From the IMG/VR virus record IMGVR_UViG_3300032675_000001, positions 1 to 64,000 of that record: a stretch of 64,000 bases of DNA; one strand, written 5' to 3'. Of this stretch, positions 1-60,792 are shown piece by piece. Below the pieces are notes generated by a model that saw only the letters and a program-made list of their open reading frames with translations, did no database searches and was not told the origin of the DNA. The position numbers were made by a program, and so were the translations under genes. The stretch's first letter is position 1. The number at the start of each line of letters is the position of its first letter.

Positions 1-1060
1 CATTTCCAGTGACGTTTGCGCCTGTAATAGAGCTAAGTGCTGCACCATTACCGAAGTGATTTGCAGTGACATTAGCACCAGAAATGTTACCTGTTACTGC
101 AAGTGAAGTCAAAGTGCCAACTGATGTGATGTTTGGTTGAGCAGCAGTTGTTAGATTTCCCGATACTGACGTAAATACTGCATTGTTTCCACCAATGTTA
201 CCTACATTGGCATTACCTGTTGCATTTAAAGTTCCAGATACATTTGCACCAGTAGCCGTGACTATTAATACGTTTGCTGTGCCACTTACTGAAACTCCAA
301 CATTTCCATTCGCAGTATTGATGTTAACATTGGAAGTGCCATTAGCAATTGTTGGTCCTGTTACTGCAAGAACTCCAGTTAACTGTGAACCATTACCGAT
401 GAAATAATTTGCTTTGATATTTCCTGCATTGGCATAGATGTTTCCAGAATTGGTTATCGTGTTACTCACGACATTGTTTGCACCAACTGTTCCTGAGTTT
501 GCATATATGTTTCCAGCAGTATTAAAATTGCTTCCAGATACATTACCTGTTGCGGCTATTACATAAGTGCCTAAATTGCCTACATTAGCATTACCCGTAA
601 CAGCCAATGATCCTGTTGTGGTTAAGTTTCCACCAGAAATATTTCCAGTTACAGATGCAATATTACCAATGAGACCGTTGGCTGTCACGTTTCCGGTAGT
701 GGCATTCACGTTGCCAGAAACGGTGATATTAGTTACTCCGGTGATATTTGCAGGAAGGTCAATATATAAAACTTGAGTTGCCTGTGTAATGGCAGCATAT
801 GATGCACCATTGGAACCGGCACCTATACTCAATGTGCTTGTTTGAAACTGCACTTCCGAAATGTTGGCATTGATTATTACATTGCCAGTAGGATTGTTTA
901 CAGTAATTCCCGACCCAGCATTAACGGTGAGAACAGCCTGAGACTGTAATCCAGAAAACAGTTCTGTAAAGTTCGTCTGAACTTTTTGGAATGCTGTTCT
1001 GATTGCATCTGCGCTCGAATCGTTAGGAAATGAACCGAAGTCAATATTCTGTTGTGCCAT
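1..1060 (-). CDS. Partial tail fibre/baseplate-like structural protein (runs off the window start)
   Basis: Read by eye: ATG at 1060 gives MAQQNIDFGSFPNDSSADAIRTAFQKVQTNFTELF, a T4 gp9/gp10-type N-terminal motif, followed by G/N/T-rich beta repeats (GNANVGNL); late promoter ATAAATA upstream. Confidence 0.75.
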   Translation of the reverse strand, partial: MAQQNIDFGSFPNDSSADAIRTAFQKVQTNFTELFSGLQSQAVLTVNAGSGITVNNPTGNVIINANISEVQFQTSTLSIGAGSNGASYAAITQATQVLYIDLPANITGVTNITVSGNVNATTGNVTANGLIGNIASVTGNISGGNLTTTGSLAVTGNANVGNLGTYVIAATGNVSGSNFNTAGNIYANSGTVGANNVVSNTITNSGNIYANAGNIKANYFIGNGSQLTGVLAVTGPTIANGTSNVNINTANGNVGVSVSGTANVLIVTATGANVSGTLNATGNANVGNIGGNNAVFTSVSGNLTTAAQPNITSVGTLTSLAVTGNISGANVTANHFGNGAALSSITGANVTGN

Positions 1061-4167: not shown

Positions 4168-4650
4168 TCATTGATCTGTATTTTTGTTGTTCAACATTTT
4201 GAGCAACTCATTGCGATCAAACGATTGTCCTTCACCGATGGGCTTAGTCTGTATCTCTTCGCTTTTAGCTTGCATTTTTTGATCAAGTTGAGCCTTTTTC
4301 AGTTGCATATCAAGCATTTTGAGTTTTTTGTTGATCTTTGCCGTTTTGGCAGTAATAGCATGACCAAGGAACCCGCTTGCTGCACTGAATATGTCTGCGC
4401 TGAATCTGGAATCAACTTGCATACCTAAATCTACTAGGTCTTTGTAGCTGGCAGTAGCTAGATCAGCCAATTCGTCCATCTCTTCGTCGGCTGCTTCCAG
4501 CCCTTTTACTTGAGGTAGCGCATTGTCAATCTTTTCCAGATTGCTTACTGCTTCTTGTGTTATTTCTCTTGCGTGTTCAAAGATTGGCTGAGTAAGATCA
4601 TCATCTTCGCTCGTTGCCAACTCAAACAGTTCTTCTAGCTTTTTATTCAT
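4168..4650 (-). CDS. Coiled-coil protein, possible terminase small subunit
   Basis: 160 aa, helical, late promoter CTAAATA upstream, next to the head-completion gene. Confidence 0.4.
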   Translation of the reverse strand: MNKKLEELFELATSEDDDLTQPIFEHAREITQEAVSNLEKIDNALPQVKGLEAADEEMDELADLATASYKDLVDLGMQVDSRFSADIFSAASGFLGHAITAKTAKINKKLKMLDMQLKKAQLDQKMQAKSEEIQTKPIGEGQSFDRNELLKMLNNKNTDQ

Positions 4651-4662
4651 GTAAGTATTTAG

Positions 4663-5097
4663 TTACTTGCGTCCATTATAGAACAAATCATCTTCAGTAA
4701 TGACACGAAAAGTCAATCCCTGAGCCTTACAATAAGCATTTGCTGCCGCCCACTTGGCATGGTTTATAGCAACAGTCATTCTGTCCTTTGCGCTTGCGGT
4801 CTTACTCTCAATGATGCTTTGTTTCTTCGGCTTGATTTCAACAACTTCAGCAAGGGTTTTGCCGTGTTTGTTCTTATACACAACGAAGAAATCAGGAATG
4901 TAGTTTGTTGGTTTGCCAGTAAACGGATGGCGATATTTAATAGCCATTGATTCACTTGCCCAATGTAACACGTTATCATTGTTGTCACAAAAGGTCATGA
5001 ATGTGAGTTCCCAGCCAGAACGATATCTAGGCTGGTGCTTTCCTATATACTTTTGTGGATTTTTTGGGGTATAAAGACCTTGTGCCCACTTAGCCAT
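4663..5097 (-). CDS. Head completion nuclease (T4 gp4-like, TnsA-N fold)
   Basis: PKNPQKYIG...YRSGWE...WASE...YIPDF...EIKP...KWAAA...ITE motifs. Confidence 0.9.
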   Translation of the reverse strand: MAKWAQGLYTPKNPQKYIGKHQPRYRSGWELTFMTFCDNNDNVLHWASESMAIKYRHPFTGKPTNYIPDFFVVYKNKHGKTLAEVVEIKPKKQSIIESKTASAKDRMTVAINHAKWAAANAYCKAQGLTFRVITEDDLFYNGRK

Positions 5098-22252: not shown

Positions 22253-22366
22253 TTGTTTTTCCTTTTGTTATGCCGGGTTCTAGCCGGTACGCAGTGGGTG
22301 CTGCATAAACTCTCCGCATGAGAGTGTATGAAAGTATTTATACTTTTTGCGTAAAAATGAGGATGG

Positions 22367-26949: not shown

Positions 26950-27438
26950 TCATAGATATCTAAAATTTTGGTGCTCCGATTTATGGAACTTCTGTTCCTG
27001 TATCCTCTTAGAAGTATTTATATGATAACTTATTTCTTCTAACATTAAGTTCTGTTTTAAGAGGTCTTCTTCTATCTTTACCACATAAAGAAATCGTGTG
27101 GACGGTGTAGTTGAGTTCTTGAGAAGCCTTGCGTGATTTTCTATATCCATTTTGATACTACTCAGCTTCAAGTCCAGCATTACCATTCGTCTTGCTTCCT
27201 TGAATCTTCCTGCATTATGTAGAGTGCACCAAGAAGCAGCGTGTATTAAAGATGAAAACTCGTATTCCTCCACATGCTTTGGTGTAAATGCTTTGAACCC
27301 TTTAGATAATGCTGGCATGATAGTATATTTCCCAAAAAGAGAATACTTTCCCTGCTTGTCACATGTTATCAGTATGTCCTTAATATCAGATTTAAGTCCA
27401 TGCTCAAATATCTCATCAAGTTTTGCTACGTTTTTCAT
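26950..27438 (-). CDS. Hypothetical protein
   Basis: 162 aa ORF overlapping the upstream stop. Confidence 0.6.
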   Translation of the reverse strand: MKNVAKLDEIFEHGLKSDIKDILITCDKQGKYSLFGKYTIMPALSKGFKAFTPKHVEEYEFSSLIHAASWCTLHNAGRFKEARRMVMLDLKLSSIKMDIENHARLLKNSTTPSTRFLYVVKIEEDLLKQNLMLEEISYHINTSKRIQEQKFHKSEHQNFRYL

Positions 27439-41401: not shown

Positions 41402-41905
41402 TTAAAAAGCCAACGAATAATCTACTACTTCACAGTTACGGCTGATTTCTTTGACGAAATAAACGCATCTTGGTTTTTCTCCGTCATCAATAGGCACACA
41501 TAAAAACTGCCCATTACGAAGTCTTGGTGCGAACCAAGTTACATCTGGATATATGTCTAATATTTCAATAGGTAAGAATGAAGGCGAGAACGATGTTAAT
41601 GGATTAAACTCAAATGCATGAAACCCTCTATCGTTTAAGCTAGAAAGGGGCAGAGTCTCCAAATCGCCATGTTCCTGTTCTCCGATTAGCACTTGCCAAT
41701 CAACAGGCATCTTGATCGTTTTATCAGCAATCTTTAGTACGAGTGCTGGAGAGTTAAATGATTCCAGAAAGATCAATGGTATGAAATGATAATCAACGTT
41801 AGATGGTGTTGAGTTGTCAAGTATTGCGAAACGCATATCATCTATTTCTTCTGGAAGCTGCTCAAGATTGAAGAATGTGTTTTCTTCTAATGTTAATATT
41901 CTCAT
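41402..41905 (-). CDS. Hypothetical protein
   Basis: 167 aa; TTGACA-N17-TACAAT promoter at 41912-41940. Confidence 0.65.
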   Translation of the reverse strand: MRILTLEENTFFNLEQLPEEIDDMRFAILDNSTPSNVDYHFIPLIFLESFNSPALVLKIADKTIKMPVDWQVLIGEQEHGDLETLPLSSLNDRGFHAFEFNPLTSFSPSFLPIEILDIYPDVTWFAPRLRNGQFLCVPIDDGEKPRCVYFVKEISRNCEVVDYSLAF

Positions 41906-41944
41906 GATGTTATTGTATCAAATATTGTGTTGTATGTCAACATG

Positions 41945-42781
41945 TTAGTAGTCCAACTTCTTTATTGTAAATGGATACTGTGCTTCCTTATAAAAAGCCT
42001 TACGTTGCGTTAGGTGTCTCTTTGCAAACTTGCAGGTACTTGTTAGGTCCCAAATCTGCACAAAATCCTTGTCTTCCGCTTTTCTTACACCACGCCCAAT
42101 GCTCTGAATAACACGAACAAACGACTTACCAGGTTCAATAAGTACCAAGTTAAAGATACGAGGAATATTGATACCGACAGCCGCAACGCCATACGTGGCG
42201 ACAATAATCTTGTCATCACTCGTGGCCACTTCATCGTATTCTTCCTTTCTTTCTGTTAGTTTAGTGTTTCCGTTGACAAACACCGCGTTGTCCAATCGGC
42301 TCACTAACTCTTTTCCTGCATTCACACGGTCTACTAGGACCAACGTGTTGCCAGTTTTATTGATTTCTTTGATTAGAGAAGCCATCTTATCTAATCGCTT
42401 TTCATCTTCTAAGAGATGTTTGAGTTCAGCCTGATAGTTGGAAAACTCCTTGTTATCTTTCATCTGAATGATGTTTACGTGGCAGTTAGCCAGAACTCCC
42501 TTATCCTGTAGTTCTTTTGCGCCAAGCTTTCCGACAACTGGACCAAGAGATACTAACAGTGATACTTGATCCATCAAATCCTTTGGAATCGTCCCTGTCA
42601 ATCCCCAACGAATAGGTATGTCAGAAAACACTCCTGTTAGCATAGTCTTAAGTACATCGGCCTTTGCCATGTGGCAGTTGGAAACTACTGCTCCATCAAC
42701 TATGTAATTATGATCATTTTCAATATGGAGATTGAACACTTCGTCGGGTTTATCAATTTCAGTTTTTCTTATTAGCTTCAT
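41945..42781 (-). CDS. uvsW: Split intein C-part (35 aa) fused to the C-terminal half of a UvsW-like SF2 helicase
   Basis: VFNLHIENDHNYIVDGAVVSN|CH; GLTGT, GINIP, QSIGRGVR helicase motifs III, V and VI. Confidence 0.92.
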   Translation of the reverse strand: MKLIRKTEIDKPDEVFNLHIENDHNYIVDGAVVSNCHMAKADVLKTMLTGVFSDIPIRWGLTGTIPKDLMDQVSLLVSLGPVVGKLGAKELQDKGVLANCHVNIIQMKDNKEFSNYQAELKHLLEDEKRLDKMASLIKEINKTGNTLVLVDRVNAGKELVSRLDNAVFVNGNTKLTERKEEYDEVATSDDKIIVATYGVAAVGINIPRIFNLVLIEPGKSFVRVIQSIGRGVRKAEDKDFVQIWDLTSTCKFAKRHLTQRKAFYKEAQYPFTIKKLDY

Positions 42782-43673
42782 ATAACTTCCTTATTTTTGT
42801 TGCGGTTTTTTCATCGAATCCGGAGAGGTCAGTGGGACAGCCATTAGTCAATAGCCATTCCTGTGTCACGATAATGACTCTAAAACCATTTTGGTTAGCC
42901 CACTCGTTGAGTGCAACTATTTTTGCGTCAAATATCTCACCTTTACATAACTCCGCCGGTTTCACTTCCGCTACCTGTTTGGTTTCATAGTCAACAAAAT
43001 CAGCTATGTATATTTTTCGATTACCGTTGATAGTGTATTCCAATCTCAACGTTTCATATTCTGCATCCGGATACATATACTGAAACAACGCTTCCCAGCT
43101 TGATCTATATTTCTTTCCGTTAAATTCTGCTGCCCAATGCGTATTTCGATTGTTAGAATTTGGGGTAAAGTCTCCGGCTAATATTTTAGCTTTCATCACA
43201 TCTGACCGGTGTTGTTTATCTTGGTCAGACATTTTTACACCATGCATTCCGTTTGCTTCCCCGCTATTTGCTCGGGAGGCGATGCGGCTATCGGTGTGTT
43301 TAGTCAACCCCTTTGCCCATGAAGTTTGGAGTCCGGTCTTTCCTTTATTCCATGGCACTCCTGTATTTAAATTGCGGCTACTAAGTTCAGGATGTAGTTT
43401 ATGGACTGCTTCACCACCAATTGCGGCAAGCTTGGCCTTTATTTCCCGATCGGTTATCAATCCAGCGAGAAGCAAATCCATGTTCTTCACCCAAAGATCA
43501 GTCTTGATATTCATCACTCTCTTTTTGAACTTGCCAAACTCGGGCTGTATTAATATCTCGCCAGTTGATAATTCTAATGTTGCTTTTCCAAAATCAACTA
43601 CCCTTACCCGTTGGTCATATGTTTCTAGTCGTCCATTTAATCGGACTTTCCATTGTTCATATGTAATTTTCAT
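42759..43673 (-). CDS. Free-standing endonuclease (TnsA-N/PD-(D/E)XK-like with NUMOD3-like motifs) between the split-intein halves
   Basis: PWNKG, GEANGMHG, YRSSWE...YE...YIADF...EVKP; start is likely MKITY at 43673 after SD AGGAG. Confidence 0.8.
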   Translation of the reverse strand: MKITYEQWKVRLNGRLETYDQRVRVVDFGKATLELSTGEILIQPEFGKFKKRVMNIKTDLWVKNMDLLLAGLITDREIKAKLAAIGGEAVHKLHPELSSRNLNTGVPWNKGKTGLQTSWAKGLTKHTDSRIASRANSGEANGMHGVKMSDQDKQHRSDVMKAKILAGDFTPNSNNRNTHWAAEFNGKKYRSSWEALFQYMYPDAEYETLRLEYTINGNRKIYIADFVDYETKQVAEVKPAELCKGEIFDAKIVALNEWANQNGFRVIIVTQEWLLTNGCPTDLSGFDEKTATKIRKLYEANKKN

Positions 43674-43700
43674 AAATACTCCTGCCTTAGCCATATGTAT

Positions 43701-44717
43701 TTATGTTTTGTTTACGATTTCGTGATTTTCAGTAAGTTCGTCTGCCCGACACCATCCTAGGTTTGTTAGAAACTTATGATTTCCGGTAACCCTAATTACA
43801 CTTCCATTATCAAATTCCATTTCATACATTTTTTCAGTGGAAGATATTGTAAGATTCCGGTGTTGTTTTACTACTGTATCTTCCTTAAAGATTCCGGACT
43901 GTTCGCAATAATTGATTATTTTATCTCCAACTTTAACGTCCTTGATTGGTAGATGCCCATTCGGGGTTAGCACTCTGGCTTCTCCATCAAAACATTCGTC
44001 AACCATCACACATACAACGTCTTCAAAAAAGAATTCGTCCATTTCTGGATCAGCATCTTCATCCTTAACCGATTTGAATAGGTTATTTAGAGATTGCCAT
44101 GTGCAAATGGTATGTGTCTTACCGTATTCTTTACGATCACCAAAGTAGACACCCACATCTAGTCCAAGATTGATGTAGTCTGCCTCTGTTTGCACCACCA
44201 GAGACTTGTTAGGGACGATTACAAGCGATCTACCATATCTTTCTATACATTGTGATAGTCCAGCAGTGATAAGCGTCTTACCGGCTCCTGTGGCAACTTC
44301 TTGCAATGCCTGTGGATTAGATAAAAAGGTGTTAATAATCTCAACCTGATAGTCTCGCAATAAGATTGGTTTTCCTTCTGCTGGATGACCCTTTGGCCAT
44401 AGTGTTTCAGCGAAGGTATCTTCTTTGATCAAATCAAATTCTAGGTCTTGACGGCTGCGATGATCTTCCAACTCAATATCATAATCATGATCTATCAAAT
44501 ATGGAATGATCTGATCTAACAGGTTGAGATATGTGCTTCCGGCTAGAGAGAAGTAACTTACTTTTCCGTTCCACCTACCAAGTCTTACGGCAGGTAAAAA
44601 TCTTGCACCTGGTTTTTCGTACTCAAACTTTTTTGTTAATGCTCTTCGGACATCTAGTTCAAGTCCTTCTATTTTTACATTAACTTCATCTTTGATTATT
44701 ATTTTTGCTTCTCTCAT
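43701..44717 (-). CDS. uvsW: N-terminal half of a UvsW-like helicase fused to a split intein N-part (97 aa, 43704-43994)
   Basis: LRDYQ, ATGAGKT, VMVDE|CFDGEARVLTPNG (block A), VTGNHKF (block B). Confidence 0.92.
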   Translation of the reverse strand: MREAKIIIKDEVNVKIEGLELDVRRALTKKFEYEKPGARFLPAVRLGRWNGKVSYFSLAGSTYLNLLDQIIPYLIDHDYDIELEDHRSRQDLEFDLIKEDTFAETLWPKGHPAEGKPILLRDYQVEIINTFLSNPQALQEVATGAGKTLITAGLSQCIERYGRSLVIVPNKSLVVQTEADYINLGLDVGVYFGDRKEYGKTHTICTWQSLNNLFKSVKDEDADPEMDEFFFEDVVCVMVDECFDGEARVLTPNGHLPIKDVKVGDKIINYCEQSGIFKEDTVVKQHRNLTISSTEKMYEMEFDNGSVIRVTGNHKFLTNLGWCRADELTENHEIVNKT

Positions 44718-45700
44718 TTTACCTCTATTGGACGTGAATCTTTGACGATGATCATCTTATCAATGCGCGTAACAGAAGGAGGATTATCATAAACGGATAC
44801 GCACATTTGCTGTTCATCATCACTTGTTGCTGTTCGGAAACCGTTGGAAATAGTTATATCGGCTTTAGTCATTGATTCCCTGATTTGTTTACCAAGCATA
44901 CCATGTGCAAGGCCCCTGCCAAACACTATTTTGCTGCAACCAAGCCCCGTGATCATAGATGCCAGTGTTTCTGCCTCAGCAGCCTCAACGTATGTCGTTT
45001 GCTCTGCAGCAAACTTTAGAAATGGATCATGGTCAACCAACACGGGATCAACCCTGATTCCAAGCTGACTAAGTTTATACAGCGTCATTGGCTCAAGATT
45101 TAGCTCCATGTCACCTATCACATCTGCAAGTACAGATGACATTGCGGCAATCATTAGTTTGCCATTGACCGATGTAAGTGTCGGATTCCAGACCTGAGCA
45201 TCATACTGCTTCAAGTCTTCCAGAATCTGGTTAATGTTTTCACAGAACTGGACCGTTGAAAAATGTTTGTACAGTTCGGTTACAGCAATTTTGAGTGCAG
45301 TTGTTCTAAACGGAGACGTATAAAGTTTACGTTCCTTGTTCCACTGAAAAGTGTTGCTGGGAATTTCCCTAAATTTGGTAATGAAAGTCTTGTTAAACGG
45401 AACACGAATAGTGATGTCATCATCTACGATGCTCACTACTGCTCCGGTATATTCTGGTGTGCTTTGAACAACCATAGACTTCCACGGAAGAGCAATGACT
45501 GTCTTCCCATCAATACCCTGCTTGGTCATCTGCTTATTATATTTAGTTACCAGACGATCAAACAAATCTGCCTGATTGGATGTAACTCTATTATCATTGT
45601 GAATCATCGTCTGCAAGTTTGCAAGAAACTTGTAGTCATATTGGCTTAGACTAATCTTCCCCTGCAGGAAAAAGTAGAGCAGTTGTTCTTTCGTTTCCAT
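44714..45700 (-). CDS. Hypothetical protein
   Basis: 328 aa ORF coupled to uvsW. Confidence 0.65.
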   Translation of the reverse strand: METKEQLLYFFLQGKISLSQYDYKFLANLQTMIHNDNRVTSNQADLFDRLVTKYNKQMTKQGIDGKTVIALPWKSMVVQSTPEYTGAVVSIVDDDITIRVPFNKTFITKFREIPSNTFQWNKERKLYTSPFRTTALKIAVTELYKHFSTVQFCENINQILEDLKQYDAQVWNPTLTSVNGKLMIAAMSSVLADVIGDMELNLEPMTLYKLSQLGIRVDPVLVDHDPFLKFAAEQTTYVEAAEAETLASMITGLGCSKIVFGRGLAHGMLGKQIRESMTKADITISNGFRTATSDDEQQMCVSVYDNPPSVTRIDKMIIVKDSRPIEVK

Positions 45701-45734: not shown

Positions 45735-45765
45735 GAAAAAAGGGGAAGACCTAAGCCTCCCCCTG
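45735..45765 (-). terminator. Intrinsic terminator
   Basis: Minus strand AGGGGGAGGC-ttag-GTCTTCCCCT-TTTTT. Confidence 0.7.
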
Positions 45766-57571: not shown

Positions 57572-57588
57572 AGATGTATTTATACTTT

Positions 57589-60753: not shown

Positions 60754-60792
60754 AGTAAACTCCGTATGTTGTATTTATGCTTTACATAACAA

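Follow-up and report, generated by a model that had tools for sequence, protein, structure and literature searches.

A probable mobile fractured-gene cassette at the DExH box of a UvsW-like phage helicase

Three genes at the locus

The DNA analysed here, referred to as the window, is a stretch of 64,000 nucleotides covering positions 1 to 64,000 of the IMG/VR virus record IMGVR_UViG_3300032675_000001. Within it lie three minus-strand genes that together comprise a split UvsW-like helicase, a split intein and an endonuclease. This arrangement had been read from the sequence in an original prediction, the coordinates and sequences of which all proved correct. The features of the locus are as follows.

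43701-44717, minus strand: gene 1, 338 aa, N-extein followed by the N-terminal intein fragment (IntN)
43995-44717, minus strand: N-extein, residues 1-241, with UvsW_N and Walker A GAGKT, ending ...VMVDE in motif II
43704-43994, minus strand: IntN, 97 aa, CFDGEAR...EIVNKT, with Cys1 and block B TGNH
43701-43703, minus strand: IntN stop codon, TAA
43671-43705, minus strand: endonuclease control element (promoter-like box and hairpin)
42759-43694, minus strand: middle ORF in another reading frame, 311 aa, open from 43694
42759-43673, minus strand: putative free-standing homing endonuclease, 304 aa, ATG at 43673
41945-42781, minus strand: gene 3, 278 aa, C-terminal intein fragment (IntC) followed by C-extein
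42677-42781, minus strand: IntC, 35 aa, MKLIRK...AVVSN, with block F DHNY and terminal Ser-Asn
41945-42676, minus strand: C-extein, Cys+1 (42674-42676), then HMAKADVL... and Helicase_C, 243 aa plus stop

The cassette measures 1318 bp (42677-43994). The predicted end of gene 1, ...VMVDE followed by a 97-aa IntN (43704-43994), was borne out by a match of residues 242-318 to TIGR01445 intein_Nterm (37.2 bits; cut-off 24.5), and IntN also matches Pfam Hint (30.3 bits; cut-off 29.7). Likewise, gene 3 starts with the predicted 35-aa IntC (42677-42781) ahead of CHMAKA, residues 14-36 matching TIGR01443 intein_Cterm (21.8 bits; cut-off 15.6). The two fragments are encoded as separate polypeptides: IntN is closed by its TAA codon, and IntC has its own ATG and a Shine-Dalgarno sequence, AAGGAAG (42786-42792), that lies within the endonuclease gene. 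The first 23 nt of the IntC gene overlap the 3′ end of the endonuclease gene in a different frame.

A three-gene layout of this kind could be produced artificially if a single continuous ORF, encoding an intein that splices in cis and contains an endonuclease, had been broken by frameshift errors. We found no evidence in support of this explanation, to which we attach almost no weight, and several observations contradict it. Logan contigs from three runs of different lake and freshwater samples cover positions 41800-44800 end to end without a single difference or indel, the identical sequence is present on a 360,683-bp IMG/VR contig, and 95-100% of sampled words occur in 16 runs. The stops and frames are thus reproduced in independent assemblies. 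Moreover, 80 diverged loci and that of Salmonella phage S16 keep the three ORFs, the IntN stop, the separate Shine-Dalgarno sites and the overlap, and a separate start and control element serve the endonuclease.

An interrupted UvsW-like helicase

The two exteins together carry the UvsW N-terminal domain, SF2 motifs I and II and Helicase_C, the features that define the UvsW family: the N-extein matches Pfam UvsW_N (26.4 bits; cut-off 25.3) as well as ResIII and DEAD, and the C-extein matches Pfam Helicase_C. When compared with the uninterrupted helicase of phage Phosso, the N-extein aligns as far as DE and the C-extein from the H of DEAH onwards, so that the joined exteins are colinear with it and removal of the intein restores a conserved host protein. 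The top solved match of the Phosso orthologue is T4 UvsW (2oca; E 4e-22). The host is an uncultured freshwater jumbo phage, the target gene encoding a UvsW-like helicase of recombination and repair.

The insertion can be placed to the exact base from intein-less alleles of close relatives. IntN, the endonuclease gene (HEG) and IntC are missing from most of the 80 closest helicase loci, and all 27 junctions that were read out have DEVH or DEAH exactly at the cassette site. A relative that is about 92% identical carries a precise intein-less allele with DEVH, and in such close relatives the sole difference is Val or Ala in place of Cys at the +1 position. A contig from a pond metagenome omits 42674-44022 and has instead 31 letters that encode ...IIVDEV. 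A single clade contains empty sites, split inteins with or without the endonuclease, and a doubly fractured helicase.

Because the gene is interrupted, it might be regarded as a dead, disrupted pseudogene with intein-like ends that are decaying remnants. We consider this extremely improbable, given that all SF2 motifs are intact, that the intein blocks are conserved and that the extein halves are 75-85% identical in amino acids to those of a related locus, L085, despite saturated synonymous sites.

A predicted class 1 split intein

The residues expected of a splicing intein are present on both sides of the break. All 120 IntN homologues among the matches listed have DE directly before Cys, Cys1 itself and the block B His (TGNH in 113, SGNH in 6 and TKNH in 1). 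IntC ends in ...ENDHNYIVDGAVVSN immediately before the Cys+1 nucleophile, with a terminal Asn and the block F DH motif, and the junction of Asn with Cys is found in 79/79 related IntC sequences, where the last two residues are SN (59), AN (19) or TN (1). A penultimate His, which helps Asn cyclisation in many inteins and is common but not obligatory, is therefore absent from the window IntC, which has Ser, and from all 79 relatives. The original prediction had singled out this Ser-Asn end as unusual, and for inteins in general it is; among split inteins it is not, being the norm of the family (SN/AN) and shared with the DnaE split inteins (4kl6 and 7qil, ...IASN), and so it marks nothing special. 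As the solved DnaE split inteins end in ASN, the missing penultimate His does not exclude membership of class 1. These features support a class 1 split intein, for which splicing is predicted, that interrupts motif II precisely after DE, with (C)H following.

Structure modelling is consistent with this assignment. The predicted IntN-IntC complex scored 0.70, against 0.00 for the best control, with about 210 contacts; the mark used for this score is reached by 51/78 solved complexes and by 2/108 mismatched pairs. Because the model may have learned solved split inteins, a high score speaks for likeness to them rather than for binding by the window copy. IntN and IntC are accordingly only predicted to associate in one HINT fold.

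According to the mechanism that we propose, two polypeptides would be made, N-extein-IntN (338 aa) and IntC-C-extein (278 aa), the intein halves of which would associate into the HINT fold and undergo class 1 protein trans-splicing. An N-S acyl shift at Cys1 would be followed by trans-thioesterification to Cys+1, cyclisation of IntC Asn35 and an S-N shift, yielding a 484-aa helicase with the motif II sequence DECH, as in T4 UvsW. A search for further inteins across the 117-kb record returned the IntN and IntC halves and no others.

The intein fragments might instead hold the helicase halves together non-covalently, with no splicing or very slow splicing owing to the change of the penultimate His to Ser. 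The presence of Ser, Ala or Thr at this position across the clade fits such an arrangement, and phages are known to have split genes whose products come together with no splicing, Aeh1 nrdA, which mobE splits, being an example (PMC3045599). We nevertheless judge it improbable, because hundreds of diverged copies show no variation in Cys1, block B T/SxxH, block F DH, the terminal Asn or Cys+1, and the solved DnaE split inteins share the ...ASN end. Furthermore, the native Val or Ala at +1 is replaced by Cys in intein-bearing alleles only, which is sensible only if Cys+1 is the splicing nucleophile.

The endonuclease and its control element

The original prediction had placed a separate TnsA-like nuclease ORF, in another frame, between the intein halves; its own start, fold match and catalytic residues uphold this. 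The second ATG (43673; 304 aa), and not the first ATG of the 311-aa ORF, is the most likely start of translation, because AGGAG lies 6 nt upstream and most listed homologues are about 300-306 aa long, covering 94-98% of the 311-aa ORF. In the protein, an N-terminal domain is followed by DNA-binding motifs of the NUMOD3 type and, at the C-terminus, by a TnsA-like PD-(D/E)xK nuclease (RSSWE194...D225...E236-x-K238). It matches PHROG 22417 and 15427, both 'endonuclease', and shows weak similarity to the I-TevI DNA-binding domain (E 0.14). The window protein itself scores 18.8 bits against Tn7_TnsA-like_N (PF08722), below the cut-off of 26.5; within the family, 29/49 members match this domain (E <= 0.01, best 5.1e-7) and 23/49 match NUMOD3. 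In the AF2 model (mean pLDDT 85.5), residues 157-303 find TnsA (1t0f) with Z 8.1, the next match reaching 5.5, and E194, D225, E236 and K238 are invariant in the 49 endonuclease sequences.

An EDxHD or Vsr-like assignment was considered and ruled out. The EDxHD motif is a composite motif of a Vsr-type active site with a catalytic His (PMC3239194). The 49 sequences contain no invariant His in the catalytic domain and have an invariant Lys instead, the endonuclease has no profile match to 3r3p/I-Bth0305I or Vsr, and the fold matches are lower (Z 4.9 for I-Bth0305I, 3r3p, and 4.2 for Vsr). With matches to NUMOD3 and TnsA-like PD-(D/E)xK, the protein likewise falls outside the GIY-YIG and Vsr-like classes.

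Upstream of the endonuclease, a late-promoter-like box, CATAAATAC (43697-43705), spans the IntN stop codon and pairs with GTATTTATG (43671-43679), which holds the endonuclease ATG, to form a 9-bp hairpin (RNA fold -9.6 kcal/mol, z -4.46). The AGGAG Shine-Dalgarno sequence (43679-43683) straddles the loop and 3′ arm of this hairpin. The box motif recurs in 25 of 26 distinct diverged loci, 24-43 nt upstream of the first ATG that a script found downstream in any reading frame (32 nt in 15/25). No compensatory pairs were seen in the consensus fold of the hairpin alignment, as the 5′ arm is an invariant motif; the hairpin thus rests on conserved complementarity, the single-sequence z-score and inverted repeats of different sequence read by eye in three other loci (L090, L153 and L157). 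The motif YATAAATAC is also found 5′ of other genes in the window.

The same control design has been described for fractured genes (PMC2677866) and for T4 I-TevI and Aeh1 mobE. On this reading, CATAAATAC would act as a late promoter, and expression of the endonuclease would probably be limited to late infection. As the box supplies the 5′ arm that pairs with the start codon in the hairpin, we propose that only transcripts started at the promoter would be translatable.

Mobility and horizontal spread

The family comprises at least 192 IntN clusters and at least 153 endonuclease relatives. Megablast of the locus against GenBank phages returned no match, and relatives were found by protein-level searches only. 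The architecture was identical in all 80 endonuclease-homologue loci examined, the linkage to this insertion site being exclusive.

The cassette and its host gene have diverged to different extents. Compared with phage S16, IntN is 63% and IntC 49% identical, against 27-28% for the exteins; compared with L085, nucleotide identity is 85-94% in the cassette and 70-74% in the exteins, falling abruptly where IntC meets the extein. Of 97 homologues, 90 have a higher identity in IntN than in the exteins, which shows horizontal spread. The cassette is also under purifying selection: against L085, dN/dS is 0.18 for IntN and 0.15 for the endonuclease, and IntC has a dN of 0 at a dS of 0.37, with dS saturated in the exteins. 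Because synonymous sites are saturated, pairwise dN/dS is uninformative for most pairs of loci, and the usable values come from L084 versus L085 and a few other pairs.

The NUMOD3 motifs, the similarity to the I-TevI DNA-binding domain, the exclusive site linkage, the presence/absence polymorphism and the discordant divergence give indirect grounds for homing as the presumable role of the endonuclease. The enzyme presumably cuts intein-less DEVH or DEAH alleles of co-infecting relatives, after which recombinational repair would copy in the cassette along with the Cys+1 codon.

A more static history, in which the intein still splices and the cassette is a fixed relic with an inactive or domesticated endonuclease, has some appeal in view of a relative, L015, that lacks the endonuclease and retains the split intein, the sequence ATGA there combining the start of IntC with the stop of IntN; endonuclease loss evidently does occur. 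We hold this history to be unlikely for the window copy. Its catalytic E...D...ExK residues are invariant and its endonuclease dN/dS is low, the cassette dS of 0.4-0.6 is far under that of the flanking exteins, and intein-plus and intein-minus alleles occur together in one pond sample. The low dS of the cassette relative to the exteins, together with this co-occurrence, argues for recent movement.

Discussion

The locus is very probably a mobile fractured-gene cassette, for which we propose trans-splicing and homing, that splits the DExH box (motif II) after its Glu and ahead of the x residue; the change from Val or Ala to Cys in motif II is the mark of invasion. The original prediction had named it a candidate new orthogonal split intein. 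The UvsW host and the nuclease class are indeed new, whereas the copy in the window is one of hundreds of homologues, among them those of Salmonella and Proteus phages that are in culture and whose sequences date back years, and its Ser-Asn end is not distinctive. Support for its candidate splicing and orthogonality comes from the predicted IntN-IntC complex and from weak sequence similarity to the split inteins in use. A search confined to the open literature gave no description of a UvsW split intein or of a TnsA/NUMOD homing endonuclease. We see an even chance that the wider picture may be that of an undescribed, very widespread split-intein family at the UvsW DExH box, driven by an uncharacterised class of homing endonuclease, with some relatives adding a second, atypically split Walker A intein and a Vsr-like endonuclease to give a helicase from three polypeptides through two presumably orthogonal trans-splicing reactions.

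Natural split inteins are working parts for protein ligation, labelling, cyclisation and split-gene delivery, and the fast, mutually orthogonal split inteins in use are derived from phage loci of the fractured-gene kind. With its hundreds of variants, the cultured phage S16, a Cys1/Cys+1 junction with small DE/CH flanks and weak similarity to gp41-1, NrdJ-1 and DnaE, the present family would, judged from its sequences, be a reasonable source of orthogonal pairs.

The host helicase belongs to the same family as T4 UvsW (PDB 2oca), by UvsW_N and as the best solved match, and the DECH of the predicted spliced product is the motif II of T4; unlike it, T4 uvsW has no interruption, and the window helicase belongs to a jumbo-phage branch, with 51-58% identity to those of Phosso and Atu_ph07. 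The endonuclease has its best fold match in TnsA, the endonuclease subunit of the Tn7 transposase (PDB 1f1z, 1t0f; 139 residues, Foldseek probability 0.99), with which it shares the E/D/K catalytic pattern. Identity is only about 15%, however, the locus has no TnsB/TnsC partners or transposon context, and the domain, joined to NUMOD3 motifs in one protein, is always found within a fractured helicase gene. I-Bth0305I and the EDxHD Vsr-like homing endonucleases (PMC3239194, PDB 3r3p) share the reversed order, with NUMOD motifs N-terminal and a restriction-endonuclease fold C-terminal, and the niche between split-intein halves; they differ from the window family, in which the catalytic domain shows the canonical E...D...ExK, its Lys being invariant, and lacks a conserved catalytic His. 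The endonuclease would bring a TnsA-like PD-(D/E)xK lineage into the known homing endonuclease families.

Among split inteins, those of Npu and Ssp DnaE (PDB 4kl6, 7qil) have the canonical split site, fragments of similar size and a comparable IntC block F/G (VYDIGVERDHNF..FIASN versus VFNLHIENDHNY..AVVSN in the window), with a shared Ser-Asn end and Cys+1. Their halves, by contrast, are encoded at distant loci without an endonuclease and interrupt a different host protein, and sequence similarity is weak (E about 0.2 for IntN and 0.24 for IntC). A cultured counterpart is the homologous element of Salmonella phage S16 (gp114/gp114.1/gp115; NC_020416), with the same DE/CH site and three-gene layout and an endonuclease that is 37% identical (E 2e-38); elements of this type are also present in STP4-a, SEA1, CF-SP2 and Proteus phage PM2. 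The S16 host protein is a T4-type UvsW, 27-28% identical, and its IntC ends in His-Asn; as T4 UvsW reads DECH, Cys+1 is native in S16. The S16 genes are annotated merely as 'DNA helicase / hypothetical protein / UvsW'.

The locus is a textbook fractured gene of the kind described by Dassa 2009 (PMC2677866) for the gp41-1..8, NrdJ-1, IMPDH-1, NrdA, DnaE, ligase and terminase loci; the family to which it belongs is large, and sequences of it from cultured phages already exist. It shares with them the one-strand order of N-extein-IntN, free-standing endonuclease gene and IntC-C-extein, the overlap of the downstream gene start by the endonuclease 3′ end (23 nt in the window), a hairpin with a TATAAATA-type late-promoter element 5′ of the endonuclease, variants that lack the endonuclease, and a phage setting in genes of DNA metabolism. 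The window IntN weakly matches gp41-1 (E 0.07) and NrdJ-1 (E 0.008). Two components are new: the UvsW-type SF2 helicase, which lies outside their eight enzyme types, and the NUMOD3 plus TnsA-like PD-(D/E)xK endonuclease, theirs being GIY-YIG or Vsr-like. The findings extend the accepted view of the origin of fractured genes and do not alter it.

A UvsW-like helicase gene fractured by a split intein

In the window, a helicase resembling UvsW is encoded in two halves (the exteins), separated by the N- and C-terminal parts of an intein (IntN and IntC) and by an endonuclease gene. These three minus-strand genes are tightly packed, and their coordinates and sequences in the original prediction proved exact on re-reading.

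Genes and other features of the locus and its flanks
44714-45700, minus: conserved 328-aa ORF upstream, without a family match; its stop overlaps the helicase start (ATGA), and a terminator-like hairpin (45741-45764, minus) lies directly upstream of it
43701-44717, minus: gene 1, 338 aa, with UvsW_N, ResIII and DEAD domains; ...VMVDE, then the 97-aa IntN (CFDGEAR...TGNH...EIVNKT-stop)
42759-43694, minus: endonuclease ORF, in a frame different from that of the IntC gene overlapping its 3′ end
41945-42781, minus: gene 3, 278 aa; the 35-aa IntC (MKLIRK...ENDHNYIVDGAVVSN), then CHMAKADVL... and Helicase_C
41402-41905, minus: conserved 167-aa ORF downstream (PHROG 11279), syntenic at 4270-4770 in the related locus L113
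39873-40571, minus: 232-aa ORF, 1.4 kb downstream of the helicase; a second putative free-standing homing endonuclease gene

The 232-aa ORF matches PHROG 314 'homing endonuclease' (E = 6.9e-6) and zero Pfam or NCBIfam models; by eye its start (MTIYLYKK..TGFKYLGKT) is GIY-YIG-like, and NGT..TPE motifs are repeated.

Independent assemblies and an empty allele

Sixteen public runs contain 95-100% of the locus's sampled words, and the Logan contigs of three runs, drawn from different lake or freshwater samples, together span 41800-44800 with 0 differences and 0 indels. The predicted stops and frames of the split genes are thus reproduced in independent assemblies, which rules out an assembly artefact. 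The parent IMG/VR record is 117,345 bp long (completeness estimate 32%); an identical copy of the fractured locus on a 360,683-bp contig, together with the lake-water metagenome runs, indicates that the source is an uncultured jumbo phage. In a relative about 92% identical, from a pond sample, a 5.3-kb contig has 31 letters in place of the stretch between 42673 and 44023, and they encode ...GIAGIIVDEV. The site is precisely empty: it lacks the 1318-bp cassette (42677-43994) and has Val in place of the Cys+1 codon. The same sample also has a contig carrying the endonuclease and IntN. Elsewhere, Logan contigs of two lake runs (X1 and X9) break at the endonuclease gene borders and near the IntN 3′ end (42709-42809, 43618-43718 and 44628-44728). 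At these points the summed depth is two to three times higher, a pattern expected where several phages present together have conserved intein ends in common and differ in between.

The insertion lies inside the DExH box

The closest uninterrupted helicases are those of Sinorhizobium phage Phosso, Agrobacterium phage Atu_ph07 and Rak2/121Q-like jumbo phages (47-58% identity). The joined exteins are colinear with the Phosso helicase across IIDEAHQAKADVL, and the best solved match of the latter is T4 UvsW (2oca, 4e-22), whose motif II is DECH. Most of the 80 closest C-half loci in IMG/VR had no detected IntN, endonuclease or IntC. Junctions of such intein-less loci read DEVH or DEAH (27 of 27 read out), whereas every intein-bearing allele examined has DE/C-H, which places the element inside the DExH box and means that it brings or requires the Cys at x. 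The spliced helicase would have a T4-type DECH.

Salmonella phage S16 has an annotated homing endonuclease gene, gp113 (L001:3360-3995), directly upstream of its fractured uvsW. T4 has segE at this position, and the reported target of segE is uvsW; from these arrangements, selfish nucleases appear to have targeted UvsW repeatedly. In other relatives (L113:67-4238, in IMGVR_UViG_3300005805_000060, and proteins P0018, P0020, P0082, P0031 and P0087) the same helicase is broken twice, with a second intein at Walker A (GAGK/C...HHN/T) that is contiguous in P0018, P0020 and P0082. In L113 a 335-aa ORF divides this second intein, leaving a very short IntN of about 37 aa; the C-terminal motif of this ORF (...YGDYWHGNP...VLVIWEHE) is Vsr-like by eye. 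Assembly of the L113 helicase would involve three polypeptides and two distinct split inteins, both with a separate ORF between their halves.

Properties of the intein halves

Curated models matched both halves above their cut-offs (TIGR01445 intein_Nterm on IntN, 37.2 versus 24.5; TIGR01443 intein_Cterm on IntC, 21.8 versus 15.6), as did Pfam Hint (30.3 versus 29.7), and their lengths, 97 and 35 aa, fit a canonical split site. Cys1 and the block B His occur in all 120 IntN homologues listed (TGNH 113, TKNH 1, SGNH 6), block F DHNY throughout the related IntC sequences listed, and a terminal Asn with Cys+1 in 79 of 79 IntC. We predicted the complex of IntN and IntC, each with ten extein residues, alongside three controls: the pair scored 0.70 and the best control 0.00, a likeness rather than proof because split-intein complexes have already been solved. 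In a benchmark, 51 of 78 solved complexes and 2 of 108 mismatched pairs reached the 0.70 mark. The nearest solved inteins to IntN are DnaB mini-inteins (4o1r, E = 1.5e-5), followed by weaker matches to NrdJ-1 (E = 0.008), gp41-1 (E = 0.07) and Npu DnaE (E = 0.2). The Ser-Asn end of IntC, first considered distinctive, is instead the family norm (SN 59, AN 19, TN 1) and also that of the solved DnaE split inteins (...IASN), whereas phage S16 IntC ends His-Asn.

A TnsA-like nuclease between the halves

Translation of the endonuclease likely starts at the second ATG (43673), which has AGGAG 6 nt upstream and lies where most of its homologues, about 300-306 aa long, begin. Residues invariant across 49 members include RSSWE194, E207, R210, D225, E236, K238 and K251. 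Tn7_TnsA-like_N is matched by 29 of the 49 (best 5e-7) and NUMOD3 by 23 (best 9.5e-13); the sole PDB profile match, within the NUMOD3 stretch, is the I-TevI DNA-binding domain (E = 0.14). The AlphaFold model (mean pLDDT 85.5) best matches TnsA (Z 8.1, residues 157-303), clear of VRR_NUC (5.5), I-Bth0305I (4.9) and Vsr (4.2), in agreement with the nuclease class originally proposed. The EDxHD family has a 'reversed' organisation, in which N-terminal NUMODs that bind DNA precede a C-terminal catalytic domain (PMC3239194). The window endonuclease has the same domain order, but its active site is a canonical E...D...ExK, in contrast to the His-based site of Vsr. Our literature search found nothing connecting TnsA-like nucleases, NUMODs and homing.

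A widespread, mobile family

The element is not unique to the window. There are at least 192 clusters of IntN homologues; the 120 listed are mostly near 338 aa in length, the size of the helicase N half plus IntN. Endonuclease homologues form at least 375 protein clusters; among at least 153 endonuclease loci in IMG/VR, the order N-extein-IntN, endonuclease, IntC-C-extein was found in 80 of 80 examined. PHROGs has existing families for both halves, and in GenBank the matches of 27 phage records extend over the full N half and IntN. In S16, gp114, gp114.1 and gp115 are annotated 'DNA helicase', 'hypothetical protein' and 'UvsW'. Compared with the window, S16 is 63% identical in IntN, 49% in IntC and 37% in the endonuclease (2e-38), but 27-28% in the exteins. 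At the nucleotide level, locus L085 is 85-94% identical in the cassette and 70-74% in the exteins, the identity changing abruptly where IntC meets the extein; homologue P0001 has 99% identity in IntN and 81% in the extein, and P0002 has the reverse pattern. These contrasts point to movement. IntN (dN/dS 0.18), the endonuclease (0.15) and IntC (dN 0 at dS 0.37) are under purifying selection; extein synonymous sites are saturated. One locus (L015:3696-4105, IMGVR_UViG_3300023311_000653) has no endonuclease gene but keeps IntN and IntC, the stop of the former and the start of the latter sharing the tetranucleotide ATGA; it represents the stage of the fractured-gene model at which the endonuclease is lost.

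Putative control elements

The sequence CATAAATAC (43697-43705) straddles the IntN stop codon, and its reverse complement GTATTTATG (43671-43679) includes the endonuclease start codon; the computed fold is a 9-bp hairpin (-9.6 kcal/mol, z -4.46). A YATAAATAC box occurs in 25 of 26 distinct diverged loci, 24-43 nt upstream of the first ATG that a script found downstream (32 nt in 15 of 25), and this spacing holds whether the box lies inside the IntN coding sequence, across its stop or after it. In loci whose sequences differ there, different inverted repeats are visible by eye at the corresponding position; aligning the hairpin across loci gave zero compensatory pairs. The box occurs 6 times in the window, where 1.5 matches would be expected (a count of 6 was reached in 2 of 100 shuffles), which suggests that this phage uses T4-type late promoters. 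Further boxes, all on the minus strand, lie at 22334-22342, 27014-27022, 57576-57584 and 60771-60779; an ORF starts 4-17 nt downstream of three of the four, and none was found at 27014.

Comparison with known fractured genes

The element is real and well supported. No description of a UvsW split intein was found in the openly accessible literature searched. The locus could be useful as a split-intein source, its splicing and orthogonality being putative.

Every anatomical feature agrees with the fractured genes of Dassa et al. 2009 (PMC2677866). Hairpins occur at 15 of 16 published loci, 10 of these with TATAAATA (PMC2677866), and equivalent hairpins are reported for T4 I-TevI and segB and Aeh1 mobE; in such genes, only late transcripts initiated inside the hairpin are translatable. 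The window's hairpin and late-promoter-like box have this arrangement. The Shine-Dalgarno of the IntC gene (AAGGAAG) lies within the endonuclease gene, the two overlapping by 23 nt, as in published fractured genes (PMC2677866). The locus differs from the 2009 set in its endonuclease class and in its UvsW-like host protein, which falls outside the eight enzyme types described there.
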